A stretch of DNA of 64,000 nucleotides, from the sequence record NC_048048.2; one strand, 5' to 3'. How positions within the stretch are numbered: the stretch's first letter is position 1; the number at the start of each line of letters is the position of its first letter. The position numbers and the translations under genes are program-made. Shown one piece after another: positions 5,789-63,365 of this stretch. The notes beneath the pieces are model-generated. The model saw nothing but the letters and a program-made list of their open reading frames with translations. It had not been told where the DNA came from and did not search any database.

Positions 5789-5826
5789 CTTCTATGACGC
5801 GAATGGCGTCGAGTCAACTCATTTCT
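5789..5826 (-). promoter_or_regulatory. class A-variant promoter whose 17-bp spacer is exactly a class B operator (5795-5811)
   Basis: AGAAATGAGTTGACT-[CGACGCCATTCGCGTCA]-TAGAAG on minus strand. Confidence 0.7.
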
Positions 5827-5980
5827 TGTAGAAGTGCGAAGCTGCCCAAATAAGGGCGCCAACACCTGCTAGGCCCCAGATCAGGGTCGACCCATGCAGG
5901 ACGATGCGCGCATGCGAGACATAGTAGACCAGTCCTGCGCCGACGATGACGGCAATGGCGATGCCGAATTTGGAATTCAT
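5819..5980 (-). CDS. small two-helix membrane protein
   Basis: Start MNSKFGIA after GAGGA RBS. Confidence 0.65.
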   Translation of the reverse strand: MNSKFGIAIAVIVGAGLVYYVSHARIVLHGSTLIWGLAGVGALIWAASHFYKK

Positions 5981-6058
5981 GTCGATCCTCTGAAACCGAT
6001 GCGGCATAGGCCCGTTGAGGGCCTTGTTACCGCCGGCGGAGCTTCCACCGGAAAATCT

Positions 6059-6109
6059 TCTGTGACGTCGATCGTGACACTTGTCAACCACGGCGTCGTG
6101 TGTCTAGGT
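6059..6109. promoter_or_regulatory. back-to-back divergent promoters plus class B operator (6063-6079) at the strand switch
   Basis: TTGTCAA at 6081-6087 reads TTGACA leftward and TTGTCA-N17-CTAGGT rightward; TGACGTCGATCGTGACA adjacent. Confidence 0.65.
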
Positions 6110-6135
6110 AGAGGGACGAGTGCATGAGGACGGCG

Positions 6136-6588
6136 ATGGGGCGCTATACCAGCTTGTTCGAGGAGGCGGCCCAGGCTGTGGACGCAAGGTCCCAGTATCC
6201 AGGGCAGACCATCCCCGGACTGTGGGAGACCTCCGATACGGCTTCCTGGTCGGTCCTGATGGGCGTGATTATGGGCGATGCCCTGGCTGTCGTCTGTCGT
6301 CGACGAGACGATTGTGTGCTCGAACATGCCCTGGAGCGCTTGATCCAGATCACGGCGGGCGTGGAGGTTGAACTAAAGGGCGACCCCGCGCAGATTGCGT
6401 CGCGCAGGCTTAGGCTGGCGGCCCAAATCAACGCCGAACGTGTGGAGACTGCCGTCGAGCGCCTTAGTCGACTCGCGGCCGAGGCAGCCACCCACCTCGA
6501 AGGCGAGAATGATCCTCGTCTCAAGCAACTGGTCATCGACATACGCGCCGCCATTGGCGACGCCAAGGAAGCAGGAAAGATCGAGTGA
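6136..6588 (+). CDS. hypothetical protein
   Basis: Start MGRYTS after GAGGA; first rightward gene. Confidence 0.7.
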   Translation: MGRYTSLFEEAAQAVDARSQYPGQTIPGLWETSDTASWSVLMGVIMGDALAVVCRRRDDCVLEHALERLIQITAGVEVELKGDPAQIASRRLRLAAQINAERVETAVERLSRLAAEAATHLEGENDPRLKQLVIDIRAAIGDAKEAGKIE

Positions 6589-7139
6589 CGACGCCGACCA
6601 AGACCAAGATCAAGGGTTCCAAACGCTTGGCCCGCCGCGCGGCGGCCCGCGCCCTCTATGGCGTCAAGCCTCCCGCTGGCGGCTACAAGGTCAAGCCCTC
6701 GACCCGCTTCTTCTCCAAGCCCGCGCTACCCTCGGAGAGGGAGACACGGATAGAGACCCTCACGGGCATCCTGGAGAAGGCGACCAAGGTCAAGCAAAAC
6801 CAACCGCCCTTCTATCAGAACATCTATTGGACCGACCGCTCGGGTACGACCCAGCGGCTGGTTGAAATGCCCATGATGCACCTGAAGTCGGCGATCCATC
6901 TGGTCCGGCTCAATCGCATCGAGGCCATGAAGGCGGCGGCCAAGGTCAAGGGGCAGGCTGAGCGCAGTGCGCTCAATTCCCGCGCGGCCCTGGCCTGCGC
7001 GTGGCTGGTCTGCATGGAAGCCGAGGCCGAGCGCCGCGATCCGACCTATGCCGCCCTGCGCAAGCTGCAAGGCCACACCAAGGCCACGCCGACCCCGGTC
7101 GAGATCGCGGCCCTCCCTGGCACCTTCATCGGCGCCTAA
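6585..7139 (+). CDS. basic hypothetical protein
   Basis: ORF track 184 aa, GTGA coupling. Confidence 0.7.
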   Translation: MTTPTKTKIKGSKRLARRAAARALYGVKPPAGGYKVKPSTRFFSKPALPSERETRIETLTGILEKATKVKQNQPPFYQNIYWTDRSGTTQRLVEMPMMHLKSAIHLVRLNRIEAMKAAAKVKGQAERSALNSRAALACAWLVCMEAEAERRDPTYAALRKLQGHTKATPTPVEIAALPGTFIGA

Positions 7140-7143
7140 CCCC

Positions 7144-8232
7144 ATGGTCTACTACGCCACGCGCTACGGCCTCCCTAACGGTTCGATCCAGATCACCCAG
7201 TGCTATGCCGAGTCCGAAGAACACCTCAAAGAGGTGATGGCGGCGCGTGGCATGGGCGAGGTCCACCATCCGACCGGCTACGCCATCGCCAAGCCCACCA
7301 TGCCCTCCGCATGGCTTGAGAAGCGCGACTACGCCAAGGCCATCCATGCCTTGACCTGGGCGGCGATGATCGCCGTCAAGTCGGGCGTGGACGCCTGGAC
7401 CCTGCTTCACGACAGGGGCCTGATGCACGAGTTGGCGCACCTCAACGAGTACAACACCGAGGTCACCGCCCACCGGCCGATGGATGCTTGGTTGAACGCC
7501 TTCGGCCACCCAAGCGGGCTGGGCGCTGAACCGATCGATCTCAGGGCGCGTCGGCTGAAGCTCGTCGACGATCTCAAGGCCTTCGAGGCGACGGTCCCTG
7601 GACTGGCGCCCACACCGCCGAAGATCACGACCGCCGACTATAGCGAACTCGAAAAGCGCGTCATGGCCTACGCCTACGACTACCTGCTCGAAGACAGCGC
7701 CATCGAGTTCAAGACCGCGCCCAAGAAGGGCGAGAAGATCGAGGTCTTCTACGACTATGCTGCCGAGGACGTCACCCCGCCTCCGCCTCGGATGCGCGAG
7801 GGCTCCCGCGACTTCGACAAGCAGCGCCTGGAGCAATCCAAGGCCGCCAAGATGCAGCGCACCCAGGCTCTGGTGGCCAAGCTGAAGGCGTCCACCGACA
7901 AGGTCAAGGAAGCCGCTGAAAAGGCCAACGCCATCTTGGCGCCGCCCTCGGAGGCAAGGGAGTCTGCGTTCAGTTCGCTCCTGCGCGAGTACGCCGACAA
8001 GGTGATGAGCGCCCCGATGCGCAAGGACGCTGTCATTCCCAACGTGTTCTTGACGGGCAGGTCCTTCCGAGCCTCAAAAGTCGAGCCGGAAGTGCAGAAT
8101 TTCGATCCCAAGGAACAGAAGTTCAAGTACGAGTACATCTTCGAGGTGCCCAGCAAGACCCTAGATCAGAAAATCCTCGAAAACCTGACGCACAAGCAAG
8201 ACTTGGCGTTCAAGCTCGGAAGTCCTCTGTGA
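7144..8232 (+). CDS. HExxH-motif family protein, paralog 1, with long C-terminal extension
   Basis: Start MVYYATRYG; LLHDRGLMHELAHL; alignable to 9987-10487 and 35798-36400. Confidence 0.75.
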   Translation: MVYYATRYGLPNGSIQITQCYAESEEHLKEVMAARGMGEVHHPTGYAIAKPTMPSAWLEKRDYAKAIHALTWAAMIAVKSGVDAWTLLHDRGLMHELAHLNEYNTEVTAHRPMDAWLNAFGHPSGLGAEPIDLRARRLKLVDDLKAFEATVPGLAPTPPKITTADYSELEKRVMAYAYDYLLEDSAIEFKTAPKKGEKIEVFYDYAAEDVTPPPPRMREGSRDFDKQRLEQSKAAKMQRTQALVAKLKASTDKVKEAAEKANAILAPPSEARESAFSSLLREYADKVMSAPMRKDAVIPNVFLTGRSFRASKVEPEVQNFDPKEQKFKYEYIFEVPSKTLDQKILENLTHKQDLAFKLGSPL

Positions 8233-8732
8233 TGATTACTCCTGCCCGCCTGCCGGAACTGGACGACCGTTGCGCCTGCTATGGCCAATGGCTCGACGAA
8301 GACATGTGGGTCACCGGCACGATCGTCGCGATCAGCGGCAACGGGGCCACGATCAAGACCGATCAGGGCAAGGAACTGAAGGTTCCCCACCGGCGCCTGA
8401 CCTGGAAGAAGGCCCGCTCGGAGTGGGCAGTCTGGTCGCCTCAGGTCGATCATGAGGTCGAGAAGATTCGCACCCAACGGGGCGGAGACGGCCGATCGAA
8501 GTACAATCGCAGGCTCGTGCCCGGCGAGTACATTCGCTGCCAGATGGGTTCGAAGTTCGTCGGCGGGTTCGTCTGCCGCGTGCTGCTCGAAGGTTTCATG
8601 ATCACCATCCCCAAGGAGAAATCCCTGGTGCCCGACGCTGGCGTCGGCAACTTCGTGATCTCCGCCGACATGCTCTCCTACGACCAGGATCGTCAATGCT
8701 GGCAGGCCCGCTACACGCGGGTCAAGCCGTGA
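8229..8732 (+). CDS. hypothetical protein
   Basis: ORF track 167 aa, coupled. Confidence 0.7.
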   Translation: MMITPARLPELDDRCACYGQWLDEDMWVTGTIVAISGNGATIKTDQGKELKVPHRRLTWKKARSEWAVWSPQVDHEVEKIRTQRGGDGRSKYNRRLVPGEYIRCQMGSKFVGGFVCRVLLEGFMITIPKEKSLVPDAGVGNFVISADMLSYDQDRQCWQARYTRVKP

Positions 8733-8908
8733 CCAAGGACGACGCGCTCAAGGTCGCCGAGGCCGTGAACGCCATCGGAGACGTGGGCTTCTATCGGACC
8801 GAGACCCTGGCGCGTCTGCGTCGGGCTTTCCCCGAGGTCGCCGATGTCCTGGTCATTGACTATCCGTCCAGCCGCCAGGAAAGGGAGGCTCGCCGTGCAT
8901 CTGCCTGA
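8729..8908 (+). CDS. small hypothetical protein
   Basis: GTGA-coupled start VTKDDALK. Confidence 0.55.
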   Translation: MTKDDALKVAEAVNAIGDVGFYRTETLARLRRAFPEVADVLVIDYPSSRQEREARRASA

Positions 8909-9482
8909 CGACGCCATTCGCTGGAAGGTCAAGGCACCGCGCCTGCTGCCGCTGATCCCTCGGCCCTGGCTTCAGGAGGCGGCTGAAACGGTTCGCGCCG
9001 AATGGTCGGGGCTGCGTCGAGGTCATCATGAGCCGTCGATCACCTCCTATCAGCCGTTCGTCCGCGATGTGCCGGCGCATCAGAAGCTCAATCCTGGGCT
9101 CTCGTTCATCTATACCAACGGCGTGGCCCAGTACCACACCGACGGCAACTACCCGCGCTTCTTCTACCTGCTGATCCTTCACTCGCGGTCCTACTGCGTG
9201 GACGGCGGTGCGTGGCCCGAGCCCTTCGCCGCCGATCGCCCAGGCGATTTGATCTGCCTGGACAGCCACCTTGAGCACGGCCTGCGCGCCAAGTGGCTCG
9301 ACGGGCCAGAAGACCTCGATCCTGAGGAGATGAACGTCAACCGCTGCCTGCCGAATTTTTGGCTGGCCTTGTCGATGGACTCCTGGGCGCTCTTGACACC
9401 GGAGCAGACGATCATGGCCTATAGCCGCGCTTTGGAGCACAACAACAAGAACATGCCGGCGCAAGCCCTGGAGATCGCATGA
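8895..9482 (+). CDS. 2OG-Fe(II) oxygenase/cupin-fold protein
   Basis: HTD...GDLICLDSHLEHG = HxD...H facial triad; GGGAGG RBS before GTG 8895. Confidence 0.6.
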   Translation: MHLPDDAIRWKVKAPRLLPLIPRPWLQEAAETVRAEWSGLRRGHHEPSITSYQPFVRDVPAHQKLNPGLSFIYTNGVAQYHTDGNYPRFFYLLILHSRSYCVDGGAWPEPFAADRPGDLICLDSHLEHGLRAKWLDGPEDLDPEEMNVNRCLPNFWLALSMDSWALLTPEQTIMAYSRALEHNNKNMPAQALEIA

Positions 9483-9976
9483 AGACCCACTTCCATCGTA
9501 TCCAGCCGTCCACGGTCCAGGACGCCATCGAGCTTCTGCACTCGTGGATGGACGAGAACGACAAGCTGGAGTTCATCATGGAGGGCCAGTCGGGCCGTCT
9601 GCATCATGGTTTCATGCGCCACGTGCGCAACGAATGGAACCTGTGGGACACCTCCACGCCGATCGTCCGCAACACCAAGGCCGTCTACGGCGTCGACCAC
9701 GCCGACGACATCTCGGGCCTCATCGAAGGCGGTCTGCTCGCCAAGCTGAACGGCGATGAGTTCAATTTCGACGCCGAGGCGCGGCGCTACAAGGACCACT
9801 GGGCGCGCGAGGCCGCCAGCAAGGTCAAGGCTGTGCCGATCGAGCCCTATGCCTTCGCCAACAACACCGGACGGGCCGACCACCTCGTGCCCAACCCGAC
9901 TGCTCGTCCAGGCACATTGGAAGCGCCGCGTAAGCGGGGAATCCTTGACCGCCTGTTTTCCCACTTCAGCCAATAG
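9479..9976 (+). CDS. hypothetical protein (DUF6794-like)
   Basis: HHGFMRHVRNEWNLW...YGVDHADDISGLI motif recalled from memory. Confidence 0.55.
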   Translation: MKTHFHRIQPSTVQDAIELLHSWMDENDKLEFIMEGQSGRLHHGFMRHVRNEWNLWDTSTPIVRNTKAVYGVDHADDISGLIEGGLLAKLNGDEFNFDAEARRYKDHWAREAASKVKAVPIEPYAFANNTGRADHLVPNPTARPGTLEAPRKRGILDRLFSHFSQ

Positions 9977-9986
9977 GAGGCCTGAC

Positions 9987-10925: not shown

Positions 10926-10989
10926 AAGGCGCGACCGGAGAGCGGCGGCGAAGCCGGCGTGAAACGGGATGCGATCGTGCTCTAATTCG

Positions 10990-11015
10990 TTGACACCGTG
11001 ACGCGACTCGTGGCA
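10990..11015 (+). promoter_or_regulatory. TTGACA promoter with class B operator (10999-11015)
   Basis: TTGACACCG-TGACGCGACTCGTGGCA, intergenic. Confidence 0.65.
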
Positions 11016-11025
11016 CGAACAGTGC

Positions 11026-12221: not shown

Positions 12222-12230
12222 GAGGAAGCG

Positions 12231-12814: not shown

Positions 12815-13079
12815 GGTTCTAAATCGCCGAGACTTCGGCGGTAAAGTTCCTCGTGGCGCTAAGTCTATCGACAGAAACACGCCATACGGGAACCCTTTCC
12901 ATATCTCGCGTAAGATGACGCGAACACAGGCGATAGCAGCTTTCAGTGTCTGGCTTCCGACACAACCTGCATTGATCGCTCGCGCCCGTCGCGAACTCTA
13001 TGGCTACAATCTCGCCTGCTGGTGCGATCCCTTGCCTTGTCATGGGCATGTCTGGAGGAAAATCCTCATTTCCCCGTGA
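12786..13079 (+). CDS. DUF4326 family protein
   Basis: IDRNTPYGNPF...LYGYNLACWCDPLPCHGHV; start uncertain; visibly AT-richer. Confidence 0.8.
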   Translation: MSTHGSWVCEVLNRRDFGGKVPRGAKSIDRNTPYGNPFHISRKMTRTQAIAAFSVWLPTQPALIARARRELYGYNLACWCDPLPCHGHVWRKILISP

Positions 13080-13093
13080 CGCCATCCTTGACA
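13077..13093. promoter_or_regulatory. class B operator (degenerate)
   Basis: TGACGCCATCCTTGACA upstream of HD-domain gene. Confidence 0.45.
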
Positions 13094-16060: not shown

Positions 16061-16096
16061 AAATCTGTTGACAGGCCTCCTCGCCATCACGTAAGA
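16059..16096 (+). promoter_or_regulatory. class A promoter (AGAAATCTGTTGACA-N17-GTAAGA) within stem-loop
   Basis: Repeated motif. Confidence 0.8.
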
Positions 16097-16124
16097 GAGC
16101 GTGACACCAACGAGGAGGCCCGTC

Positions 16125-18200: not shown

Positions 18201-18248
18201 GAAAACTGTTGACTTGACGTGGTTGCTTGCACTATGTCACGGTCAACA
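18200..18248 (+). promoter_or_regulatory. class A promoter within 42-nt stem-loop
   Basis: AGAAAACTGTTGACT-N17-CTATGT; TGTTGAC/GTCAACA arms. Confidence 0.8.
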
Positions 18249-18263
18249 TCACAGGAGACCCGC

Positions 18264-21409: not shown

Positions 21410-21444
21410 CAAACGCCAGCATCTCCCCAAGGATGCTGGCGTTT
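21397..21444 (+). promoter_or_regulatory. class A promoter overlapping a 13-bp-stem hairpin followed by a T-rich tract (terminator-like)
   Basis: AAACGCCAGCATC/GATGCTGGCGTTT then TCATTT. Confidence 0.75.
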
Positions 21445-21460
21445 TCATTTGGAGGATCGC

Positions 21461-21718: not shown

Positions 21719-21755
21719 CACTTGATCGATAGGCGTCCTAGATATCGATCATCAG
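21706..21755 (+). promoter_or_regulatory. class A promoter within stem-loop
   Basis: AGAAATCGGTTGACA-N17-CTAGAT; TGATCGATA/TATCGATCA arms. Confidence 0.8.
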
Positions 21756-21769
21756 CAGAGGAGAGCCCT

Positions 21770-23818: not shown

Positions 23819-23854
23819 AAAACGGTTGACACAGTTGGTAGGCGTCTCTATGAG
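23817..23854 (+). promoter_or_regulatory. class A promoter within stem-loop
   Basis: AGAAAACGGTTGACA-N16-CTATGA. Confidence 0.8.
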
Positions 23855-23884
23855 GGGGCGACTGAAACCAGGAAAGGATTTGCT

Positions 23885-25416: not shown

Positions 25417-25420
25417 GCCG

Positions 25421-25448
25421 CCGCCTAGGGCGCATGCGCCCTAGGCGG
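25421..25448. repeat. perfect 28-bp palindrome
   Basis: CCGCCTAGGGCGCATGCGCCCTAGGCGG equals its reverse complement. Confidence 0.9.
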
Positions 25449-25458
25449 AAATTCTACA

Positions 25459-25496
25459 AGAAATCTGTTGACACCCTCTTTGAGCGTAGCCTATGG
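25459..25496 (+). promoter_or_regulatory. class A promoter
   Basis: AGAAATCTGTTGACA-N17-CTATGG. Confidence 0.8.
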
Positions 25497-25525
25497 TGCG
25501 TACATAGCCGCTTGAGGAGAGCCCC

Positions 25526-27819: not shown

Positions 27820-27824
27820 CTGCA

Positions 27825-27862
27825 AGAAAACTGTTGACACCCGTCAAAGGGGTCTCTAAAAG
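27825..27862 (+). promoter_or_regulatory. class A promoter
   Basis: AGAAAACTGTTGACA-N16-CTAAAA; TTGAC/GTCAA inverted repeat. Confidence 0.8.
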
Positions 27863-27891
27863 ACGCTCATCCGCCGCTAGAGGAGACCCCG

Positions 27892-30473: not shown

Positions 30474-30480
30474 TCCTACG

Positions 30481-30527
30481 AGAAAGCTGTTGACAGGCCT
30501 CTTGCCGCCCCTTAGAAGGGGTTCAAC
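30481..30527 (+). promoter_or_regulatory. class A promoter within stem-loop
   Basis: AGAAAGCTGTTGACA-N17-TAGAAG; GTTGA/TCAAC outer arms. Confidence 0.8.
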
Positions 30528-30541
30528 GAAAGGAGGCCCTC

Positions 30542-31938: not shown

Positions 31939-31990
31939 GTTCGTCCTGATGCTGGGACAGCCACGTCAGGCGCTCTGGCGGCGGGCTGCA

Positions 31991-32041
31991 AGAAAACTGT
32001 TGACACGCCTGCTCTAGGTCGCCTAGAACGGGCGTGTCAAC
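31991..32041 (+). promoter_or_regulatory. class A promoter within near-perfect 43-nt stem-loop
   Basis: GTTGACACGCC/GGCGTGTCAAC plus inner TCTAGG/CCTAGA. Confidence 0.85.
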
Positions 32042-32058
32042 GAAAGAGGAGACACCCC

Positions 32059-35200: not shown

Positions 35201-35798
35201 CGAATTCGCCGTCGCCTATCCAGGCTGGAAAATGGTGCTGTCCTTCCCCCATCCGCCTATCGATCTGGGCCTGCACGGCAAGGCGCCAGATCAGGTGCGG
35301 GGGTGGCTTGTCTCACGCCACTATTGCTGCACGCTCCAGCGCCTGAACCCCACGCAGGTCAAGAAGAAGCCCGACGAGCGGGATGACGTCCTGGAAGGGG
35401 TGGGCGGGGAGAGCTTGACCAGCATGCAGGAGGCCTACGACGAGGCCATCCGCCAATTCACCCACTGGCGCCGCGACAAGCTCGACTTCTATCGCTGGCG
35501 CTATGCCAAGCACCTGCTCGAACGAGCCCTTCCAGGCGTGCGTGAACGGCTAAAGCAGCCCCGCTGGTTCCGGCATAGCTGGCAGGACGAATACCCCGAC
35601 CAGAAGCCGCCCAAGAACCTTGACGGCGCTCGGGAGTCGCTATGGTTTCCCGAGCGGTTCATCAACGAGACCTATGAGGCCGCCTGGGGCGACGGCGAGA
35701 CCGTCCTGACCGTCGTGGCCGCCCGTTTCGGATGGACGCGAGGGCAGGCCTATCAGGCAACCGAGGACTGGTTCCGCGATCCGGTGAACTACAACTGA
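35187..35798 (+). CDS. hypothetical protein
   Basis: 203 aa. Confidence 0.7.
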   Translation: MMTPDEFAVAYPGWKMVLSFPHPPIDLGLHGKAPDQVRGWLVSRHYCCTLQRLNPTQVKKKPDERDDVLEGVGGESLTSMQEAYDEAIRQFTHWRRDKLDFYRWRYAKHLLERALPGVRERLKQPRWFRHSWQDEYPDQKPPKNLDGARESLWFPERFINETYEAAWGDGETVLTVVAARFGWTRGQAYQATEDWFRDPVNYN

Positions 35799-36400
35799 TG
35801 CCGCTCTACTTCAGCACCTACAAGTTTAAGTCGACCAAATATCCGGGTCGGTGGGCCGAAGCCGCGACGCAGTTCTATGCGCGCAACTATGGTCATGCCC
35901 TGCAAACCCTGAAGATGCGCAACCTTGATGAGCACGTCTGCCGGCCGCCGCTGGCTCGGCCCGGTATTGTCACGGGCGTTGAAGGTCCACCGGAGATGCC
36001 CTCGGATTTGCTGCGGCAAGGACGGCTGGCTGAAGCCATGCACGCGGCGATCTACATGGGTTTCTTGGCGCACGCCTGTGAGGCTACGGAAGGCTACGAT
36101 CTCCTTCATGACATAGGCGTCCTGCATGAGGTTGGGCATCTGCTCCTGTTCGACGCCTGGGAAAAAGCAGGGTCTCTGCGAAACCACTACAAGGCCACCG
36201 GACGGGACAAGGAGATCATTGCCGAAGTCGAAGCCCTAGAACGCCGCATCCCAGGCTTTCACCCTTCCTGGTCAGGCGTGGAAGAACATCCTGCGGTCCC
36301 CTTCCCGCAGCGTCTCGCCTGGGCCAGGGATCGCATCGCTGAGCCGGACTGGTACGCCCAAGACATCCCCGAGGACGCGCCTAGGGTCTTCTTCGGATAG
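35798..36400 (+). CDS. HExxH-motif family protein, paralog 3
   Basis: LLHDIGVLHEVGHLL...RIPGF; TGATG start. Confidence 0.75.
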   Translation: MPLYFSTYKFKSTKYPGRWAEAATQFYARNYGHALQTLKMRNLDEHVCRPPLARPGIVTGVEGPPEMPSDLLRQGRLAEAMHAAIYMGFLAHACEATEGYDLLHDIGVLHEVGHLLLFDAWEKAGSLRNHYKATGRDKEIIAEVEALERRIPGFHPSWSGVEEHPAVPFPQRLAWARDRIAEPDWYAQDIPEDAPRVFFG

Positions 36401-36406
36401 CCTGCA

Positions 36407-36455
36407 AGATAACTGTTGACACCTTAGTCGGCGCCGACTACCCATGACGCAACAG
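36407..36455 (+). promoter_or_regulatory. class A promoter within stem-loop, heading the NAD operon
   Basis: AGATAACTGTTGACA; CTGTTG/CAACAG arms; inner palindrome TAGTCGGCGCCGACTA. Confidence 0.8.
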
Positions 36456-36475
36456 CTTTCACCAGGGGAGTCCAC

Positions 36476-40077: not shown

Positions 40078-40122
40078 TTGCACCGTGTCACGAAGCGTGT
40101 ACTGATGACGCGACAAGTGACA
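40078..40122 (+). promoter_or_regulatory. promoter with tandem class B operators (40086-40102, 40106-40122)
   Basis: TTGCAC; TGTCACGAAGCGTGTAC; TGACGCGACAAGTGACA, 20 bp apart. Confidence 0.6.
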
Positions 40123-45401: not shown

Positions 45402-45425
45402 TCCCCAGAAAGGTCACGTGACACC

Positions 45426-45443
45426 TTGACGCGATCAGTGTCA
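45426..45443. promoter_or_regulatory. class B operator (perfect consensus) overlapping TTGACG
   Basis: TGACGCGATCAGTGTCA at 45427-45443, intergenic. Confidence 0.7.
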
Positions 45444-45482: not shown

Positions 45483-45815
45483 GTGACCGCCCCGCCCACC
45501 TGGGACTTCTACCCGACGCCTCCGGGCTCCCTCGAACGCATGCGATACCACGTCGACTCGGCCGGATCGCATCTGCACTTCGAAATTCACAACGCCGACG
45601 GCTCGGACGACGCGCCGTTGATCGATGGCGATGCCCGCATCTTTGGGACGGTCAACTGGGAAGGCTGCATCAACTGGCGCACCCACAAGTACATGAATTG
45701 CCACTTCTGCTCGCCGGCCGATTCGCTGCGCCTGCATGAGCTATTCAAGGGCCTCTGGCGCCTCGCTAGCCTGACCTTGCCGCATTGGTGCGGGGACGTG
45801 GAGGAAAAGGCGTGA
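45483..45815 (+). CDS. hypothetical protein
   Basis: 110 aa. Confidence 0.65.
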   Translation: MTAPPTWDFYPTPPGSLERMRYHVDSAGSHLHFEIHNADGSDDAPLIDGDARIFGTVNWEGCINWRTHKYMNCHFCSPADSLRLHELFKGLWRLASLTLPHWCGDVEEKA

Positions 45816-47446: not shown

Positions 47447-48209
47447 CCTCGCCGACGCCTTCGTAGAGCGCTATGGCGCCGACCTCTTCGACGAACTGTG
47501 CGAAGGCGTCCTGTCACCTGAAGCCTATCCCCACGTCCGGGTCACCGAGACCGAAAGGCACAATGCCTGCAACCACACCTATCGTGGCGAGATCGTCCGC
47601 GAGGGCCAGGAGACGGTGTATTTCTCCCTCGATAGTGGGGATTGGAACGGAACCTGCCTGCGCTACTTCAGCGAGGAGACTTCCGAAGACTACGAGCGAG
47701 GTCATCGGGCCTATGTCTTTGATCTTAATCCCGCCCGCTTGGCCGTCCCCGTCGCCGAGGTCCGCCTGAAGGTGTCGATCTGGCTCAACAACTACCTGTC
47801 GGTCACCATGACCAACGGCGAATTCAAGGACAAGGAGCGCGGCTACGGCTATGACTCCACCTTCGCCCCTGGCGTGGTCACCGACAGACACTATCGCGCC
47901 TACGCCGCCTCCCGCGATCTGATCCCGACCTCGACCTGGATTCCTGAGACCATCGAGCGGGTTTCCACGGCCGAGTTCAACAACGCCAGGATCGAATACG
48001 AGAAGGCCTCCGATATCCGCTTCCGCAAGCAGTTTCGCGACAAGGTCGAGCCGCAGCACGAGGAGGCCCTGAGCCTGCGCGCTGGCGAGTTCTTCCGGCT
48101 GCTGTCGATCCGCTTCGCCAGTGAGGGGCGCGAGAACGCCGCCGCCCTGGCGAGGGACGTTTCCCAAGCGTGGCTTGACACGAAGAACGATTCACCAAGT
48201 TCTGCTTGA
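47439..48209 (+). CDS. hypothetical protein
   Basis: 256 aa. Confidence 0.7.
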   Translation: MTDLADAFVERYGADLFDELCEGVLSPEAYPHVRVTETERHNACNHTYRGEIVREGQETVYFSLDSGDWNGTCLRYFSEETSEDYERGHRAYVFDLNPARLAVPVAEVRLKVSIWLNNYLSVTMTNGEFKDKERGYGYDSTFAPGVVTDRHYRAYAASRDLIPTSTWIPETIERVSTAEFNNARIEYEKASDIRFRKQFRDKVEPQHEEALSLRAGEFFRLLSIRFASEGRENAAALARDVSQAWLDTKNDSPSSA

Positions 48210-48234
48210 AGTCTGTCACGAATGGCGTCATGAT
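48206..48234 (+). promoter_or_regulatory. promoter (TTGAAG-N17-CATGAT) with class B operator 48214-48230
   Basis: TGTCACGAATGGCGTCA in spacer. Confidence 0.65.
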
Positions 48235-48268: not shown

Positions 48269-48523
48269 GTGAACAAGACCAACCCGGATAGACGCTCATT
48301 CCTGGCCATTCTGGGCCTCGGCGTCGGCGGCTTTGGCGCCGGTTTGGGTGGAGGGCTCCTGGCGATCAAGCCGCCCGAGCCCAAGGTGATCGTGGCCAAC
48401 TTGCCTGCTATCGACACCGGCAACGCCGGGAAGTATCTGGCCTACGACGGTGAGAATATGGCCTGGATCAAGGTCAATCCCCAGGCCCGTCGAATCCTTC
48501 AAGACATTGAGAGCCATCTGTGA
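48269..48523 (+). CDS. small protein with twin-arginine (Tat) signal
   Basis: NPDRRSFLAILGLGVGGFGAGLGGG; AAAGGG RBS. Confidence 0.65.
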   Translation: MNKTNPDRRSFLAILGLGVGGFGAGLGGGLLAIKPPEPKVIVANLPAIDTGNAGKYLAYDGENMAWIKVNPQARRILQDIESHL

Positions 48524-50541: not shown

Positions 50542-50567
50542 TTGACGCCGTGACGTCGATCGTGTCA
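50542..50567 (+). promoter_or_regulatory. TTGACG promoter with class B operator 50551-50567
   Basis: TTGACGCCG-TGACGTCGATCGTGTCA; same offset as 10990 site. Confidence 0.7.
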
Positions 50568-50600: not shown

Positions 50601-50828
50601 ATGGCTCTCCTCCAGCATTACCAGATCGGCCAACAGGTCCGCGTCCGTCTTCTCGCAGAGGAGCCCTGGACCCAGGATTGGCAGGATTACGCTGACCTGT
50701 GGGTCGCCGGTGTCGAGTACGAGATCGGCAAGGGCACGCCCTCCTACACCCTCGCTGACCACTGGCCGCCGCGCACGCGGGGCGACATGACCAGCGAGTT
50801 CTCCGAACACCACATCGAGGCCGTCTGA
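50601..50828 (+). CDS. hypothetical protein (SH3/KOW-like beta barrel possible)
   Basis: Start MALLQHYQIGQQVRV. Confidence 0.6.
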   Translation: MALLQHYQIGQQVRVRLLAEEPWTQDWQDYADLWVAGVEYEIGKGTPSYTLADHWPPRTRGDMTSEFSEHHIEAV

Positions 50829-55443: not shown

Positions 55444-55462
55444 CCGTTAACCACAACGCGTG

Positions 55463-55513
55463 AGAACGCTGTTGACAACCTAAGATCATGCGCCTATATG
55501 CCGCATCCTTGAC
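55463..55513 (+). promoter_or_regulatory. class A promoter within stem-loop
   Basis: AGAACGCTGTTGACA-N16-CTATAT; ATGCG/CGCAT arms. Confidence 0.75.
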
Positions 55514-55540
55514 GCGGATGCTTTCATGGAGGCGCCAATC

Positions 55541-58706: not shown

Positions 58707-58715
58707 CGGTGTGCG

Positions 58716-58764
58716 AGAAAACTGTTGACAGCTTTCTGGGAACATCCTAGAAGACTGTCAACAG
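58716..58764 (+). promoter_or_regulatory. class A promoter within 43-nt stem-loop
   Basis: CTGTTGACAG/CTGTCAACAG plus TTCTGGGA/TCCTAGAA. Confidence 0.85.
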
Positions 58765-58783
58765 CCGCCGCAAGGAGACAGCC

Positions 58784-59185: not shown

Positions 59186-59187
59186 TC

Positions 59188-59541
59188 ATGAAACAACGGA
59201 GGATCAAGGATCGCTACGGCGATAGCCGCCGCGCGCCCATGACGATCAACGACGCCATCGTGGTCATCCTGGAGCACATGCAGTCCTCGGTCGCGAGCAT
59301 GGCTCGCATGCCCGAGTACCAGAACCCCCGCAATCCCAACCGCCTGCCCGAGAAGTCGCTATCGTCTTCCAAGGTCCACCCGGCCCGCTATTGGCAGGCC
59401 GCCGCGCGCCTGATCAAGGAAGGCGCCGTGGTCGCCACTTGTGGCAGCCCCGACGTCCGCGACGACTTCAATAACCCGCTGTTCATGGTCGCTGGGCCAA
59501 ACTACGACAAGGCCATCCGCACCTACCTGGGAGACGTCTGA
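59188..59541 (+). CDS. hypothetical protein
   Basis: 117 aa. Confidence 0.65.
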   Translation: MKQRRIKDRYGDSRRAPMTINDAIVVILEHMQSSVASMARMPEYQNPRNPNRLPEKSLSSSKVHPARYWQAAARLIKEGAVVATCGSPDVRDDFNNPLFMVAGPNYDKAIRTYLGDV

Positions 59542-59660
59542 TGGGCGGGCAGTTCTGGGTCGGGATTGCGGTCTGGTCTGGCGGTCTGGTTTGGGTCCTG
59601 TCCGTGATTCGACATCTGAGGTACCGGGCGCTGGAAAAGCGCCTACAAGAAAACTGTTGA
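59541..59660 (+). CDS. 39-aa single-pass membrane peptide
   Basis: TGATG start MGGQFWVGIAVWSGGLVWVLSVIRHLRYRALEKRLQENC; stop in promoter TTGA. Confidence 0.5.
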   Translation: MGGQFWVGIAVWSGGLVWVLSVIRHLRYRALEKRLQENC

Positions 59661-59685
59661 CTCACGGCTCTCGTCGGTCTAGGTA
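59648..59685 (+). promoter_or_regulatory. class A promoter
   Basis: AGAAAACTGTTGACT-N16-CTAGGT. Confidence 0.8.
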
Positions 59686-59710
59686 AGGGCTACGCAACGA
59701 GGAGGCCCTG

Positions 59711-60757
59711 ATGACGAAGCAACGGTTCGAGGTCCTGGACGCCCTGCGCGGCGTCGCCGCCGTACTGGTGATGCTCTATCACGTGGGCAACACCTTCTCG
59801 GCCGAGGCCGGCATTGACCATCTGGCGATCTTCGCCAAGCATGGCTGGGTGGCGGTCGACTTCTTCTTCATGCTGAGTGGCTTCATCATCGCCCATGCCT
59901 ACGACGCAAAGCTGGCGGCAGGGCTGGGCGTCACTTCGTTCATGCGAGCACGCATCAAGCGACTCTATCCCCTGTACTTGGTTGGAGCGCTCCTGGGAGC
60001 GATCGCGACAGTCTCGCTGACCATGGCCAAGGGCCAGCCCGTCGGTCCTGCCGAGGTGGTCCTGGTCCTGACCACCACGCTGCTATTCTGCCCCATCCTG
60101 CATGCCGCGCCCGCCTTCATTTTCAACGTCCCGGCTTGGTCCCTGTTCTTCGAGATCGTCGCCAATCTCGCCTATGCCGCCGGTTTCAAGTGGTCGTCCA
60201 AGCGCGCCCTGCTGCTCGCCTCACTGCTGGGGTTGGTCGGGCTCTGCGCCAGCCACCTTGCCTACGGTACGCTGGACGTGGGCTGGGCCGGCAACAATTT
60301 CATGGGTGGACTGGCGCGCATCACCTTTGCCTTCCCCCTAGGCGCACTGCTTTATCGCCTGCACGTTGAAGGCCGCTTCTCCTGGGTACCGCGCGTCAGC
60401 CCGGCCACGCTGATCGCCCTGCTGGTGGTGTTGACCTGCCTGCCGGCGCCGCGCGATACCCTGATCGATCTGCCGATCATCGCCGTGATCTTCCCCTTGT
60501 TCCTGATCGTCGCGGCCCAGGCGCGTTTCGCCAAGCCAGCTAAACTGCTTCTGCAAGGCGGCGACCTCTCCTACGCGCTCTATGCGACCCACACGCCGGT
60601 TCTCGTCCTGGTGTCAGCAGTGCAGTTCGCCACGCATGCCTCGCCCCTGATGCTGCTCGCCGCAGCACCCCTGGCCATCCTTCTAGCGATGGTCGCCCAG
60701 CGTCTGACGACTCAATCGCACAAGAAAGCTGTTGACACCCATCTGGTGGTGGCCTAA
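59711..60757 (+). CDS. acyltransferase-3 family (OafA/YrhL-like) membrane O-acyltransferase
   Basis: LDALRGVAAVLVMLYH, AVDFFFMLSGF, RIKRLYP, WSLFFE, GDLSYALYATH; about 10 TM helices. Confidence 0.9.
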   Translation: MTKQRFEVLDALRGVAAVLVMLYHVGNTFSAEAGIDHLAIFAKHGWVAVDFFFMLSGFIIAHAYDAKLAAGLGVTSFMRARIKRLYPLYLVGALLGAIATVSLTMAKGQPVGPAEVVLVLTTTLLFCPILHAAPAFIFNVPAWSLFFEIVANLAYAAGFKWSSKRALLLASLLGLVGLCASHLAYGTLDVGWAGNNFMGGLARITFAFPLGALLYRLHVEGRFSWVPRVSPATLIALLVVLTCLPAPRDTLIDLPIIAVIFPLFLIVAAQARFAKPAKLLLQGGDLSYALYATHTPVLVLVSAVQFATHASPLMLLAAAPLAILLAMVAQRLTTQSHKKAVDTHLVVA

Positions 60758-60770
60758 GACTAGGCCATCA
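60723..60770 (+). promoter_or_regulatory. class A promoter within stem-loop
   Basis: AGAAAGCTGTTGACA-N16-CTAAGA; TGGTGGCCTA/TAGGCCATCA arms. Confidence 0.8.
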
Positions 60771-60792
60771 ACCGCGAAGGGAGCCCCAGCGC

Positions 60793-61308
60793 ATGCCGAA
60801 GAAAATCCACACCGTGACTTTCGCCGATGGCGCGACCGCCACCCGCGAGTCCGAGAATCGGACCTACAGCCACGTGGTGGTCGGCAAGCACGACAAGCGG
60901 GTCGATATCGACTACGCCCGCAAGCGCGCCCGTAGCGATCGCAGCAACTACGACTACTACAAGAACATGGCCAACGCCCAGCCGGGCGTCCCCTCGACCT
61001 ACACCTCGCACTCGGACGACCGTCCCTTCACCTTCACCTATACCGCCGCTGAGATCGCCAAAGGCCAGGAAGAAATCGCCGGCCGCGACCCCGAAACCTA
61101 CTGCAAGGACAAGCTGGCCGAGCGTCTCGACGAGATCGAGAAGAAGGCGGCCGAGGGCTATTACGACCGCTGGAACGCCCTGACCTGGGCCTCCCGCGCC
61201 GATCTGGCGGCCAAGCAGGTGAACAACTGGTCCAAGACCTTCACCGAGGTCACCATCCTGCCGGTCGAGCACCGCGAGGCCGCCCCGCGCAAGAAGAAGG
61301 AGGCCTAG
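60793..61308 (+). CDS. hypothetical protein
   Basis: 171 aa, GGGAG RBS. Confidence 0.75.
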   Translation: MPKKIHTVTFADGATATRESENRTYSHVVVGKHDKRVDIDYARKRARSDRSNYDYYKNMANAQPGVPSTYTSHSDDRPFTFTYTAAEIAKGQEEIAGRDPETYCKDKLAERLDEIEKKAAEGYYDRWNALTWASRADLAAKQVNNWSKTFTEVTILPVEHREAAPRKKKEA

Positions 61309-61311
61309 CCC

Positions 61312-61512
61312 ATGGCCGAGCCCTATCTGGCCCCACTGAACGAAGAAAACCTCGCCCTGGTCGTCAAGGCCCTGGAGCGCTACGGCATGGACTGCCGCGC
61401 CGAGGTCTTCAACGAAAGCCTGTCCCTGGCTGACCGAGCCGCCGCCAGCGCCAGGGCCGACAAGGCCCGCGACCTGCGCATGGACCTCATGAACCGCACG
61501 GTGACGCCCTGA
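61312..61512 (+). CDS. small hypothetical protein
   Basis: 66 aa, AGGAGG RBS. Confidence 0.65.
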   Translation: MAEPYLAPLNEENLALVVKALERYGMDCRAEVFNESLSLADRAAASARADKARDLRMDLMNRTVTP

Positions 61513-61736
61513 TGGCCTGGACCTGGGAAGCCCGCAACTCCAAGACCAAGGAGGCCCTGTCGGGCACCGCCGCCACCCAAGGCGAGGCCCGCCAGATGGC
61601 CGAGCAGGGCAAGGACCGGCTGGGCTTCAAGAACACCGGGGCCTATGTCACCTCGCCCAAAGGCGTGGTCTGGCACTACGGCCTGCGTAACGACAACCGT
61701 TCCGGCTCCGTCTGGCGCCGCCTGGACAAGGACTGA
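61512..61736 (+). CDS. small hypothetical protein
   Basis: 74 aa, TGATG. Confidence 0.65.
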   Translation: MAWTWEARNSKTKEALSGTAATQGEARQMAEQGKDRLGFKNTGAYVTSPKGVVWHYGLRNDNRSGSVWRRLDKD

Positions 61737-61739
61737 CCC

Positions 61740-61931
61740 ATGACCTTCGAACTGATCCTTCGGGCCATCGCCGTGACGCTCGCCTTCCAGCAGGTCGTCT
61801 CGGGCTTTGGCGCTACGGTCGAGCGCACCGAGACTGGCTACGTGATCGGGGCGACCTACGCCTGGGCCAACCTCTTCTTCGCCGGCGCCTTGGTCGCCTT
61901 CGCCGTCTACGGCTTCAGCCTCTTCCGCTAG
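61740..61931 (+). CDS. small membrane protein
   Basis: 63 aa hydrophobic. Confidence 0.65.
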   Translation: MTFELILRAIAVTLAFQQVVSGFGATVERTETGYVIGATYAWANLFFAGALVAFAVYGFSLFR

Positions 61932-61941
61932 GAGAAACAGC

Positions 61942-62121
61942 ATGGCTCGCCGAGCCCCCTTCGACTTCGTCCAGCGCACCGCCCTGGCCCGCACCTACCT
62001 CGACGATGGCGCGCCGTTCTCGGCCGCGCGCATCCTCGAAGAACTGGCCAAGGACATTCGCGAGGCCGGCGAGGAGCGTAACCGCGCTCTGGAAGCGGCC
62101 CTGGAGGGCAAGACCAAATGA
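61942..62121 (+). CDS. small hypothetical protein (59 aa)
   Basis: Hand-translated MARRAPFDFVQRTALAR...; AGGAGA RBS; ATGA coupling to next gene. Confidence 0.65.
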   Translation: MARRAPFDFVQRTALARTYLDDGAPFSAARILEELAKDIREAGEERNRALEAALEGKTK

Positions 62122-62471
62122 TCCATCCTCCCGGCTTGATCCAGGCCGTGCGCGGCCTGAAGGGCACCTTCCTCGCCGAGGGCGGCGGCCGATTGGCGAC
62201 CCCCGACGACACCGTCGCGGCGATCGACAGCGTCTGTCGCTACATCGAGGCGACGCTGCCGCTGGGCCTGTCCGCCGCGATCGGCTACCAGATCGTCCAG
62301 AACGGTAAGACCATCCAGGTCAACGACGCCACCTGGGAGCAACTGGCCCAGGCCGTCGTCGAACTGCTCGACTTCCTGGAGCACGCCGACAATCTCACCG
62401 AGCACCTGACCAGGGCCGTGAACGCCGCCCGCGATGGTAAGGAGCTTCCGATCCTGATCGAGGCTGGCTGA
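62118..62471 (+). CDS. hypothetical protein
   Basis: 117 aa. Confidence 0.7.
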   Translation: MIHPPGLIQAVRGLKGTFLAEGGGRLATPDDTVAAIDSVCRYIEATLPLGLSAAIGYQIVQNGKTIQVNDATWEQLAQAVVELLDFLEHADNLTEHLTRAVNAARDGKELPILIEAG

Positions 62472-62686
62472 TGGCCCTGCGTCTTCGCAAGACCAAGCCG
62501 ACCCTCTGGAACGGCAACGGCTTTGGCACGTCCGCCGCCGAGTGGACGCTGGCCGACTATCCAGGCTGGTCGATCTATAAGAGCGCCGGCGACTGGTACG
62601 CTCGGAAGGGCGACCTGGAGGTCTATGCCTTCCACCGCAAGGACCTCCTGGCCAAGCTCGAACCCATCGTCAAGGCAACCGCATGA
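62471..62686 (+). CDS. small hypothetical protein
   Basis: 71 aa. Confidence 0.7.
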   Translation: MALRLRKTKPTLWNGNGFGTSAAEWTLADYPGWSIYKSAGDWYARKGDLEVYAFHRKDLLAKLEPIVKATA

Positions 62687-62976
62687 ACTACCTCCAGCAC
62701 CCAGTTCGCTTCATGGGCCAGCCGATCGGTAAGACCGCCACCTCCAAGCTCCAGGCCGCCCTGGCGGTCCTGACGTGGCTCAAGCCTGGGCAGGTCCCGG
62801 CCGAATACTGCCCGGTCGAGCGTAAGGTCCGGTCCAAGGGTCTGGACGCCGGCAAGGTCAGCAACATCCACCTCTACCCCACCATCGGCAGGCTGGTGAA
62901 GAACACCGCCTATGATGGCCAGGGCTTCAATGTCGGGATCGGCCTGCCGGATCGGCGCCTCAGTCGCAAATCCTAG
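62683..62976 (+). CDS. hypothetical protein
   Basis: 97 aa. Confidence 0.65.
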   Translation: MNYLQHPVRFMGQPIGKTATSKLQAALAVLTWLKPGQVPAEYCPVERKVRSKGLDAGKVSNIHLYPTIGRLVKNTAYDGQGFNVGIGLPDRRLSRKS

Positions 62977-62987
62977 CTCGTGACGTG

Positions 62988-63018
62988 AAAAAGGCCCGGA
63001 GTCACCTCCGGGCCTTTT
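62988..63018. terminator. bidirectional rho-independent terminator
   Basis: AAAAAGGCCCGGAG-TCAC-CTCCGGGCCTTTT between convergent units. Confidence 0.85.
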
Positions 63019-63072
63019 GCATGATGTATCAGTCATATTGGGCGAATGTGCATGATATGTCATGCAAAAAGG

Positions 63073-63150
63073 TGGCGGCCCCGGCGGGAATCGAACCCGC
63101 GACCTCTGCTTTCGGAAAACAGCGCTCTTGTTCCGCTGAGCTACGGGGCC
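63073..63150 (-). tRNA. tRNA-Arg(CCG)
   Basis: Cloverleaf GGCCCCG...CGGGGCC-G-CCA; anticodon loop TTCCGAA; T-loop TTCGATT. Confidence 0.92.
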
Positions 63151-63151
63151 A

Positions 63152-63226
63152 TGGCGTGCCCGGCCGGAATCAAACCGGCATCCGGCGCTTAGAAGGCGCT
63201 TGCTCTCTTCGTTGAGCTACGGGCAC
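63152..63226 (-). tRNA. tRNA-Arg(TCT)
   Basis: Cloverleaf GTGCCCG...CGGGCAC-G-CCA; anticodon loop CTTCTAA; atypical T-loop TTTGATT and A-C pair at top of anticodon stem. Confidence 0.85.
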
Positions 63227-63298
63227 GAGGGGTCAAGGGTCGGCTTAGCGCCGCCGCCTGGAGACCGTTCTGATCGTGACCGTGGAAATCATATCCAA

Positions 63299-63327
63299 TC
63301 CCTAGCCCATATTTCCTGGGCTGTAAA
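63299..63327 (-). promoter_or_regulatory. putative promoter for the tRNA pair (TTTACA-N17-TAGGGA)
   Basis: Correct spacing and orientation upstream of tRNAs; AGCCCA/TGGGCT hairpin in spacer. Confidence 0.55.
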
Positions 63328-63348
63328 GAAACGTGATTCGTGACACGA

Positions 63349-63365
63349 TGACATCTTGCGCGTCA
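63349..63365. promoter_or_regulatory. class B operator
   Basis: TGACATCTTGCGCGTCA in divergent intergenic region. Confidence 0.6.

Follow-up and report, generated by a model that had tools for sequence, protein, structure and literature searches.

The closest described counterparts of the element reported here are the operators of the lambda CI (OR and OL), 434 and P22 c2 repressors, which are two-fold symmetric sites of 17 bp with conserved halves and a variable centre. The element, a dyad of the form TGWCR-N7-YGWCA that shares these characters, recurs in promoters of the Caulobacter phage CcrSC (genus Bertelyvirus; genome of 317,489 bp, NC_048048.2 / MH588547.2). It was studied from a window of 64,000 nucleotides, bases 186001-250000 of the + strand; positions below are those of the window unless they are marked as genome positions. 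As among the lambda-type operators, adjacent copies can lie about two helical turns apart and cover the -35 and -10 regions. The candidate reader, the CcrSC protein gp479, is modelled as having a 434/P22-like helix-turn-helix (HTH) domain together with a LexA/CI-like C-terminal domain. Unlike the lambda-type systems, the phiCbK-type group is described as virulent, without a lysogeny switch (Gill 2012). In addition, about 45 sites are spread over the 317-kb genome of CcrSC rather than gathered in two clusters, the -35 hexamer often serves as one of the two half-sites, and the serine expected for self-cleavage is not conserved in an alignment of the gp479 family.

Other described systems resemble the dyad less closely. 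The regulon of TgrL, RtrA, RtrB, CdxA and CdxB (McLaughlin 2023, PMC10688885) also includes an oligomeric HTH repressor of the XRE family, encoded by a phage of the same subfamily and with gp450 as its CcrSC orthologue, but that regulon was defined on the host chromosome. At class II activator sites, such as those of CRP/FNR (-41.5) and of lambda CI (OR2 for PRM), a dimer site abuts or overlaps the -35 box, and the centre of the CcrSC dyad similarly falls at about -39 when TTGACA is its right half. However, the half-site sequences of these activators are unrelated to those of the dyad, and because the CcrSC dyad includes the whole -35 hexamer its occupant would compete with sigma region 4, where a class II activator sits next to it. 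MerR operators also place a dyad between -35 and -10, but CcrSC has no credible MerR protein, and on a reading with a 20-bp spacer, transcription would begin within the start codon at the four sites where that codon comes 10-11 nt past the dyad. Within CcrSC, GCAT-N9-ATGC is a second two-fold symmetric, promoter-linked site, also enriched (29 copies against 3.2 expected). It differs from the 17-bp dyad in sequence and spacing and goes with the class A early promoters described below.

The 17-bp dyad is a real element, conserved in CcrSC and its relatives. We consider it, with a probability of roughly 0.6, to be a putative operator of a dimeric, phage-encoded HTH regulator, gp479 being the likeliest, at a second class of promoters; binding, the reader and the sign of control are what we infer.

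An earlier note on this window, made from the sequence alone, had proposed an operator TGACRC-N5-GYGTCA at ten positions, and all ten of the strings that it quoted lie where it placed them. With at most one mismatch, this consensus had 10 matches in the window against 0.98 +/- 0.89 expected, and 0 of 100 shuffles reached 10. With up to three mismatches the window held 107 matches against 101 expected in shuffled sequence, which is no enrichment; the signal is carried only by the stringent form. Of the 10 stringent matches, seven fell in the 5.9% of the window that is annotated as intergenic (gene coordinates and statistics for the window follow the RefSeq annotation). When a weight matrix was used, 15 of the 22 matches scoring at least 8 were intergenic or at a gene edge (binomial p ~3e-12), as were, entirely within intergenic DNA, all 8 matches scoring at least 16. 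The proposed consensus was enriched but too narrow. In a scan of the whole phage, base 3 of each half was A or T independently and base 5 was a purine, so that the conserved core is TGWCR-N7-YGWCA. The exact core occurred 48 times in the CcrSC genome, against 8.5 +/- 2.4 in third-order Markov simulations. When the spacing was varied from N3 to N11, an excess was found at N7 only, other spacings giving 0-15 matches. Beyond the core, C6, G7 and A8 were favoured, with an A/T centre and flanking cg...cg, and the 17 bp often extend to cgTGWCRcgawtcgYGWCAcg.

A scan for dyads of strict 4-mer palindromes missed the element in CcrSC because its W position is degenerate. The scan was dominated by GCAT-N9-ATGC and by CtrA-type TTAA/GTTAAC dyads, the latter forming a group of their own that is strongly enriched and lies mainly in the terminal repeats. 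In phiCbK, the top dyad of the same scan was TGTC-N9-GACA. At the variable positions 3/15 and 5/13 only 36-41% of sites were Watson-Crick complementary, in CcrSC and RB23 alike, and therefore there is no selection for intra-strand pairing. The dyad appears to behave as two half-sites that are read independently, with no hairpin.

The following sites of the window were retained; promoter elements here and below were identified by eye or from geometry.

6063-6079, no strand assigned: dyad TGACGTCGATCGTGACA in a divergent intergenic region, matrix score 19.9
10990-11015, + strand: TTGACA (10990-10995), 3 bp, then dyad TGACGCGACTCGTGGCA (10999-11015)
13077-13093, + strand: dyad TGACGCCATCCTTGACA, its right half being the -35 hexamer TTGACA, matrix score 19.6
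40078-40122, + strand: TTGCAC (40078-40083), then tandem dyads at 40086-40102 and 40106-40122, 20 bp apart
45418-45443, + strand: GTGACA (45418-45423), 3 bp, then the perfect dyad TGACGCGATCAGTGTCA (45427-45443)
48206-48230, + strand: TTGAAG (48206-48211), 2 bp, then dyad TGTCACGAATGGCGTCA (48214-48230)
50542-50567, + strand: TTGACG (50542-50547), 3 bp, then dyad TGACGTCGATCGTGTCA (50551-50567)
63340-63365, + strand: GTGACA (63340-63345), 3 bp, then dyad TGACATCTTGCGCGTCA (63349-63365)

These nine dyads (6063, 10999, 13077, 40086, 40106, 45427, 48214, 50551 and 63349) were conserved in CcrBL9 and/or RB23. The dyad at 6063 lies 1 bp upstream of a -35-like TTGTCA (6081-6086), which is followed by N17 and CTAGGT (6104-6109) toward the gene at 6316; it is unchanged in CcrBL9 and reads TGACGTGGATCGTGACC in RB23, inside 72%-identical DNA. 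Ten nucleotides past the dyad at 10999 stands the ATG of the annotated deoxyribonucleotidase gene (11026). RB23 has TTGACA-N3-TGACGCGAGCCGTGGCA at this place, with an ATG 9 nt past it and a diverged upstream flank. The dyad at 13077, found 30 nt upstream of an HD-domain phosphohydrolase gene (13124; HD_4 domain, E 1.5e-7), is TGACGCCGTCGTTGACA in RB23, where the DNA is 65% identical. In the tandem pair, the dyad at 40086-40102 has a weak right half, GTGTAC, and an ATG (40134) follows the second dyad (40106-40122) after 11 nt. RB23 keeps both dyads, the odd GTGTAC half included, and its ATG still comes 11 nt after. The sole zero-mismatch match in the window, at 45427, is 39 nt upstream of the gene at 45483, and its counterparts are TGACGCGATCGGTGTCA in CcrBL9 and TGACGCGATCCACGTCA in RB23, the 3′ end reading ...GATCAGTGTCA in CcrSC vs ...GATCCACGTCA in RB23. 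The top matrix score of the window (21.8) belongs to the dyad at 48214, 38 nt upstream of the gene at 48269; the RB23 counterpart, TGTCACATCTGGCGTCA, is preceded by TTGCGC. For the dyad at 50551, 33 nt upstream of the gene at 50601, RB23 has TTGACA-N3-TGACACGGTTCGCGTCA, with the layout unchanged and a different spacer. The last dyad, at 63349, is the same in CcrBL9 and reads TGACGCCTTGCGTGACA in RB23. It had been linked to the tRNA locus in the earlier note, but it faces the + strand gene at 63392, which starts 26 nt downstream, and the tRNAs are on the - strand.

The tenth proposed site (5795-5811, no strand assigned) was rejected as a member since it is degraded in CcrBL9, where the aligned sequence is TGGCGAGAAGTGCCGT-G; in CcrSC its last base breaks the core (GCGTCG). 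Intragenic matches with at most one mismatch, at 5444, 12670 and 44030, have lost the motif in both CcrBL9 and RB23, and their number fits chance (~1).

What the earlier note had seen as a regulon of this region stood as a distinct promoter element, but not as one local to the window, since about 45 conserved sites are spread over the CcrSC genome and the element extends across the subfamily. Intergenic calls outside the window draw on partial annotation and a crude gene caller; our own caller misses genes (463 vs 575 annotated), over-extends starts and served for strand maps only. Many structural-module genes of CcrSC are preceded by dyads, as are the following genes.

genome 35261: dyad ahead of the portal gene
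genome 123005: dyad ahead of the endolysin gene
genome 126177: dyad ahead of a DNA methyltransferase gene
genome 128742/128772: dyads ahead of another DNA methyltransferase gene
genome 132198: dyad ahead of the exonuclease gene
genome 142351/142370: dyads ahead of the ribonucleotide reductase gene

Among the anchored CcrSC sites (score at least 12, with flanking homology), 40 of 52 are matched in RB23 by a site that also scores at least 12 and lies no more than ~130 nt from the syntenic point, against 3.9% of random RB23 windows. The half-sites persist between the two phages; spacer and flanks vary. Compared with a reversed-pattern control, the exact core was found 26 vs 1 times in phiCbK, 23 vs 0 times in CcrBL10 and 21 vs 0 times in the Brevundimonas phage Gurke, and in phiCbK and BL10 the dyad is nearly invariant, TGTCGTGAATCTTGACA. 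Colossus and CcrPW had 8-9 exact cores vs 3-4 in the control. The composite is nevertheless present in these two phages, its left half being TGCCAG or TGCCGG with the 11-bp offset from TTGACA unchanged. The preferred left half is TGTCGT in phiCbK and TGCCAG in Colossus, and the recorded host of both is Caulobacter crescentus. In a distant metagenomic phage of 266 kb, 7 of the 7 TTGACA boxes in a 20.8-kb stretch have TG[AT]CG[TC] ahead of them at the same offset. (The same phage carries a LAGLIDADG-type gene, L159:7075-7572, between two ribonucleotide reductase subunit genes.)

Caulobacter host genomes, which the earlier note had proposed to scan alongside the phage, were not enriched for the motif. 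Three of them had 49-95 exact cores per 4-5 Mb, about one tenth of the phage density, and these matches resemble coding sequence. The composite TGWCGYGAATCTTGACA, with at most one mismatch, had 0 matches in 61 Caulobacter genomes. The roughly tenfold lower host density, the lack of the composite in Caulobacter and the half-site difference between phiCbK and Colossus argue for a phage-encoded reader.

The dyads would sit on the core of host-type sigma-73 promoters in three layouts, counted here over the 45 conserved CcrSC sites. The Caulobacter sigma-73 consensus is TTGACGS-N11-14-GCTANAWC. In the first layout (19 of 45 sites) the right half is TTGAC of the -35 hexamer TTGACA, and a CTAnnn or TAnnnT hexamer resembling a -10 box follows 15-17 bp later where the downstream sequence was inspected; judged from these hexamers, the promoters are of the host (sigma-73) type. 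In the second (14 of 45), which is the commonest in the window, the dyad starts 2-3 bp past a hexamer resembling a -35 box and occupies the spacer together with the upstream end of the -10 region. The dyads at 10999, 45427 and 50551 have this layout, as does 63349 with GTGACA, and 40086 (TTGCAC) and 48214 (TTGAAG) were read by eye as having it with weaker boxes. The third comprises seven neighbouring pairs 19-20 bp apart, or about two helical turns, 40086/40106 among them, in which the upstream dyad lies over the -35 and the downstream dyad over the spacer and -10 region. Dyads upstream of the -35 also occur (window 6063, genome 93288). The earlier note's description of dyads that begin 6-9 bp after a TTGAC-like box fits 10999, 50551, 40086, 48214, 45427 and 63349, but not 13077, where the right half is itself TTGACA, nor 6063, which is upstream of TTGTCA. 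Likewise, filling of the promoter spacer is only one of the three layouts, the promoter-proximal half being the -35 hexamer itself in the first.

The promoters with a dyad would form a second class, apart from class A promoters, which are marked by the box AGAAAACTGTTGACA. Besides the genes of the window, dyad promoters head genes for replication, nucleotide metabolism and lysis, and structural genes. That dyad promoters mostly lack the class A leader, as had been claimed, was borne out: the box was present in 0 of the 8 intergenic regions with a confirmed dyad and in thirteen other intergenic regions of the window, and therefore the two promoter classes are real.

At four spacer-type dyads (window 10999 and 40106; genome 126177 and 167227) an ATG stands exactly 10-11 nt past the dyad (window 11026 and 40134; genome 126204 and 167216), without a ribosome-binding sequence, and RB23 keeps the distance at the two sites of the window. 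Since these ATGs are ~36 nt from the start of the -35 hexamer, the point where a transcript would start, and have no ribosome-binding sequence, we infer from the geometry that the mRNAs are leaderless. For the DNA methyltransferase gene with the ATG at genome 126204, the annotated start comes 36 nt later, at 126240, and may have been placed wrongly.

The gene of the likeliest reader lies outside the window.

genome 147182-147880: gp479, HTH_3 domain, E 9e-14

Its closest relatives of solved structure, by sequence, are the 434 repressor, 434 Cro and P22 c2. A structural model made with seven homologues (mean predicted local distance difference test score, pLDDT, of 82) had full-length Foldseek matches to the lambda repressor (3bdn), a lambda-186 hybrid repressor (7jvt) and LexA (3k2z/1jhf). 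The modelled C-terminal domain separately matched the C-terminal domains of LexA and the 186 repressor, and the modelled HTH domain had target-normalised template modelling (TM) scores of 0.85-0.89 against P22 c2 and 434 Cro. On this model, gp479 is a 434/P22-type HTH protein with a LexA/lambda-CI-type (S24-like beta) C-terminal domain. In CcrSC, Colossus, CcrPW, BL10, phiCbK and Gurke, the gene of the gp479 family comes after those for ribonucleotide reductase and dUTPase, and in the metagenomic phage it comes after the reductase genes and a PRA-PH (MazG-like) gene; the synteny thus spans six genera or lineages. The recognition helix is ARAAYSQYE in CcrSC, RB23 and five database homologues down to 35% identity, and the metagenomic phage has the same helix; phiCbK and BL10 have ARTAYIMYE at this place, Colossus and PW SRSAYCMYE. 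Phages with the same helix have the same preferred half-site, and between the groups the helix differs. Upstream of the gp479 gene, TTGCAC is followed by two imperfect dyads 19 bp apart, which are kept in RB23 and have the same layout as 40078-40122 of the window. Downstream of the gp479-family gene, a promoter composed of a dyad and TTGACA (genome 148226-148242; phiCbK JX163858 127297; CcrBL10 79445) is aimed back at the 3′ end of that gene and may drive an antisense or small unannotated transcript.

Candidate readers were ranked with gp479 as the most probable, followed by gp450 and then by others (gp410 and gp461). Only one DNA-binding candidate is encoded within the window, and it is a weaker one.

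4370-4759, - strand: gp410, winged-helix "HTH DNA binding protein" (phrog_14387, E 4.8e-24)

No Pfam match was obtained for gp410. Its homologues were found in 31 records, of Caulobacter phages only, and a local tblastn search gave no match in Colossus or in the phiCbK record JX163858. The helix of gp461 is nearly the same in phiCbK and Colossus. A sigma factor and GcrA were rejected as readers: CcrSC has no sigma-70 region 2 and no GcrA, and its matches to sigma region 4 were sub-threshold. A MerR protein was rejected as well, the best MerR_1 match having E 0.014 when the genome was scanned; with the protein itself, E was 0.066, at 13.8 bits vs a cut-off of 21.6.

It is possible, though we think it unlikely, that the dyad is read instead by gp450, the TgrL-type XRE protein orthologous to phiCbK gp216, perhaps with the host paralogues RtrA, RtrB, CdxA and CdxB. 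The protein shares 44% identity with the one encoded at the TgrL locus of phiCbK, all relatives have a homologue, and the helix TFQQVQKYE, identical in CcrSC, RB23, phiCbK and Colossus, would suit the common TGNCR core. The same invariance, however, leaves the left-half difference between phiCbK and Colossus, which share a host, unexplained. According to McLaughlin 2023 (PMC10688885), TgrL is highly expressed early, is mainly a repressor and forms homomers. The host paralogues form homo- and heteromers, repress many host promoters and share targets with TgrL, and their deletion cuts the burst size of phiCbK, which tgrL restores. On the other hand, the same source gives 136 host peaks for TgrL, yet host genomes are not enriched for the dyad, and it describes the TgrL motif as combining a strong half-site with a weak one. 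The gafYZ promoter fragment, reported there to be bound and repressed by all five XRE proteins, had no TGNCR-N7-YGNCA in its 326 bp, although this concerns one promoter, located by primer match in a near-identical Caulobacter genome. A string common to the gafYZ and cdxA promoter regions, CCTAAGCGA, was within chance, and CTAAGCG was not enriched in the phages. A separate regulator might also be dispensed with, if the upstream half were an extended -35 or upstream element for RNA polymerase (host sigma-73/alpha, or polymerase modified by a phage T5 A1-like protein) and the dyad hence a promoter part; this seems to us quite improbable. Such a role would fit the 19 of 45 sites at which right half and -35 hexamer coincide exactly, the left half being fixed 11 bp upstream, and CcrSC, which lacks a sigma factor and GcrA of its own, encodes an A1-like protein (Gill 2012). 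But complete dyads occur without TTGACA as the right half (45427, 48214 and 63349), and dyads are also found downstream of the -35, upstream of it, and in tandem at 19-20 bp. Moreover, the left half is G+C-rich, unlike upstream promoter (UP) elements, and neither the two-fold symmetry nor the strict N7 spacing would have a role if polymerase alone were involved.

We regard as very unlikely the binding of a borrowed Caulobacter transcription factor, comparable to the borrowing of CtrA elsewhere in the phage. Phages of the group carry functional CtrA sites, according to Mascolo 2022 (PMC9437464), and many dyad promoters outside the window also have a TTAACCAT box. Against a host factor stand the sparse, coding-like matches in host genomes, the 0 of 61 Caulobacter genomes with the composite, the different half-sites of phiCbK and Colossus on one host, and the presence of the dyad in a Brevundimonas phage. 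The dyad has no TTAA and so does not match the CtrA box TTAA-N7-TTAA, nor does it match the LexA site, which is GTTC-N7-GTTC. The earlier note had allowed for either a phage or a host regulator. Its dimeric HTH protein agrees with the strict spacing, the conserved halves, the tandems at 19-20 bp, the lack of a hairpin and the positions shared across phages, and its host option now appears unlikely. A hairpin, whether a stem-loop in the RNA of a 5′ leader or a DNA cruciform, is hardly credible as an explanation of the inverted repeat in place of a protein site. Six-base arms with a 5-nt loop do pair in some copies, for example at 45427 if G-U is permitted, but the variable positions are complementary no more often than at random, the commonest form, TGAC...GACA, has no pairing at position 3/15, and the -35 geometry places most of the dyad upstream of the presumed transcription start.

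Under the reading that we prefer, a phage-encoded HTH dimer, probably gp479, would read both half-sites of TGWCR-N7-YGWCA, and its occupancy would mainly shut out RNA polymerase, as with lambda CI at OR1/OR2 for PR. The result would be timed shut-off or delay. Exclusion of polymerase is suggested by the position of the dyads, which lie over the -35, the spacer and the start of the -10 region and are often arranged as a phased pair. A single dyad overlapping the -35 could, instead, activate the promoter or recruit polymerase. According to PMC10688885, phiCbK expresses its replication genes early, whereas its structural and lysis genes belong to the middle to late stages. Dyads precede both early-type and late-type genes, and therefore the dyad alone sets no single temporal class; a second box may set the class of a dyad promoter.

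Several observations weigh against repression by gp479. The dyad promoters have good core elements (a full TTGACA, a good -10) and would fire unaided, so that a repressor model needs a release step at the late genes. RecA-linked release is unsupported since the self-cleavage serine is not conserved in the family: in a six-sequence alignment, which compares sequence only, CcrSC has S ahead of the conserved GD motif, Colossus has N or a shifted S, and phiCbK and BL10 have A. The covariation of helix and motif comes from few lineages, most of them not independent, and the core TGNCR, common to all groups, would also suit a reader with an invariant helix. Gurke pairs a Colossus-like helix with matches to the A/T form of the motif; having few TTGACA-joined dyads, it is uninformative on this covariation. 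The dyads ahead of the gp479 gene have one core mismatch each. Finally, the half-site and flank footprint figures are inflated, as the best-scoring partner was picked, and the transcription starts were derived from geometry, a search for RNA runs with this phage having given none. We would extend the preferred reading only with considerable doubt to a LexA/lambda-CI-fold repressor, conserved near the nucleotide-metabolism genes throughout a subfamily of virulent giant phages and acting as their master timing switch. It would occupy ~45 operators that are part of the promoters, the -35 box supplying one half-site and tandem O1-O2 pairs spanning the promoter core, and would keep the genes for replication and lysis and the structural genes silent until its removal or dilution. 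Such a switch would be a repressor of the lysogeny type re-used in the temporal programme of strictly lytic phages.

Many dyad promoters of late, lysis and replication genes have a box, (G)TTAACCATG, 1-16 bp (mostly 5-7) past the -35. This box often runs directly into a second dyad (TTAACCA-TGTCAT...). It was recorded at the following positions.

genome 35303: (G)TTAACCATG box
genome 57322: the same box
genome 123028: the same box
genome 128764: the same box
genome 132234: the same box
genome 139755: the same box
genome 142388: the same box
phiCbK JX163858 ~106570: the same box
phiCbK JX163858 ~109811: the same box
phiCbK JX163858 ~188370: the same box

We take TTAACCAT to be the 8-mer half-site of CtrA. 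A box in the dyad promoters that matches the CtrA half-site could link late genes to the host cell cycle. The study of CtrA sites in these phages used the full CtrA motif for scanning (Mascolo 2022, PMC9437464).

In the thirteen class A promoters of the window, TGCAAGAAAACTGTTGACA-N16-18-CTAGAA-like precedes GGAG as the ribosome-binding site. The class A form has 61 copies in the whole genome, clustered in the terminal repeats and in three further blocks.

472-565: class A promoter
1553-1621: class A promoter
16061-16124: class A promoter
18201-18263: class A promoter
23819-23884: class A promoter
25417-25525: class A promoter
27820-27891: class A promoter
30474-30541: class A promoter
31939-32058: class A promoter
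36401-36475: class A promoter
55444-55540: class A promoter
58707-58783: class A promoter
59542-59710: class A promoter

Two of these promoters are followed by TGACGC-N5-GCTTTCA (36445-36461 and 55510-55526), which resembles half a dyad and has an odd right half common to both. Elsewhere in the window, a separate near-perfect palindrome, GATCGATAG-N11-ATATCGATC, occupies a 51-nt intergenic gap (21719-21769) just past a terminator-like hairpin region (21410-21460). A 239-nt unannotated gap (35799-36037) is part of an open frame, 35732-36400, which continues into the gene annotated from 36038, and thus the start of this gene may be further upstream.

Neither the element nor a role of the gp479 family is described in the passages of Gill 2012, Mascolo 2022 and McLaughlin 2023 that term searches brought up, and a full-text search for the core string found nothing relevant. 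Operators for dimeric HTH repressors are of a classic kind, and the fold of gp479 is classic too. The genome-wide spread in a virulent phage subfamily is unusual, as is the doubling of a half-site as the -35 box. Phages of the phiCbK type are standard tools for the study of the Caulobacter cell cycle, but their promoters and timing control have barely been described. If our reading is true, it would give a map of the second promoter class in these genomes together with a named candidate regulator, and would open a direct route to re-analysing the existing phiCbK infection time course. If the regulator belongs to the TgrL family instead, the same sites would explain the boost to phage yield given by the host XRE proteins. 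With gp479 as the regulator, a protein like the lambda repressor would be acting as a global regulator in a virulent phage.

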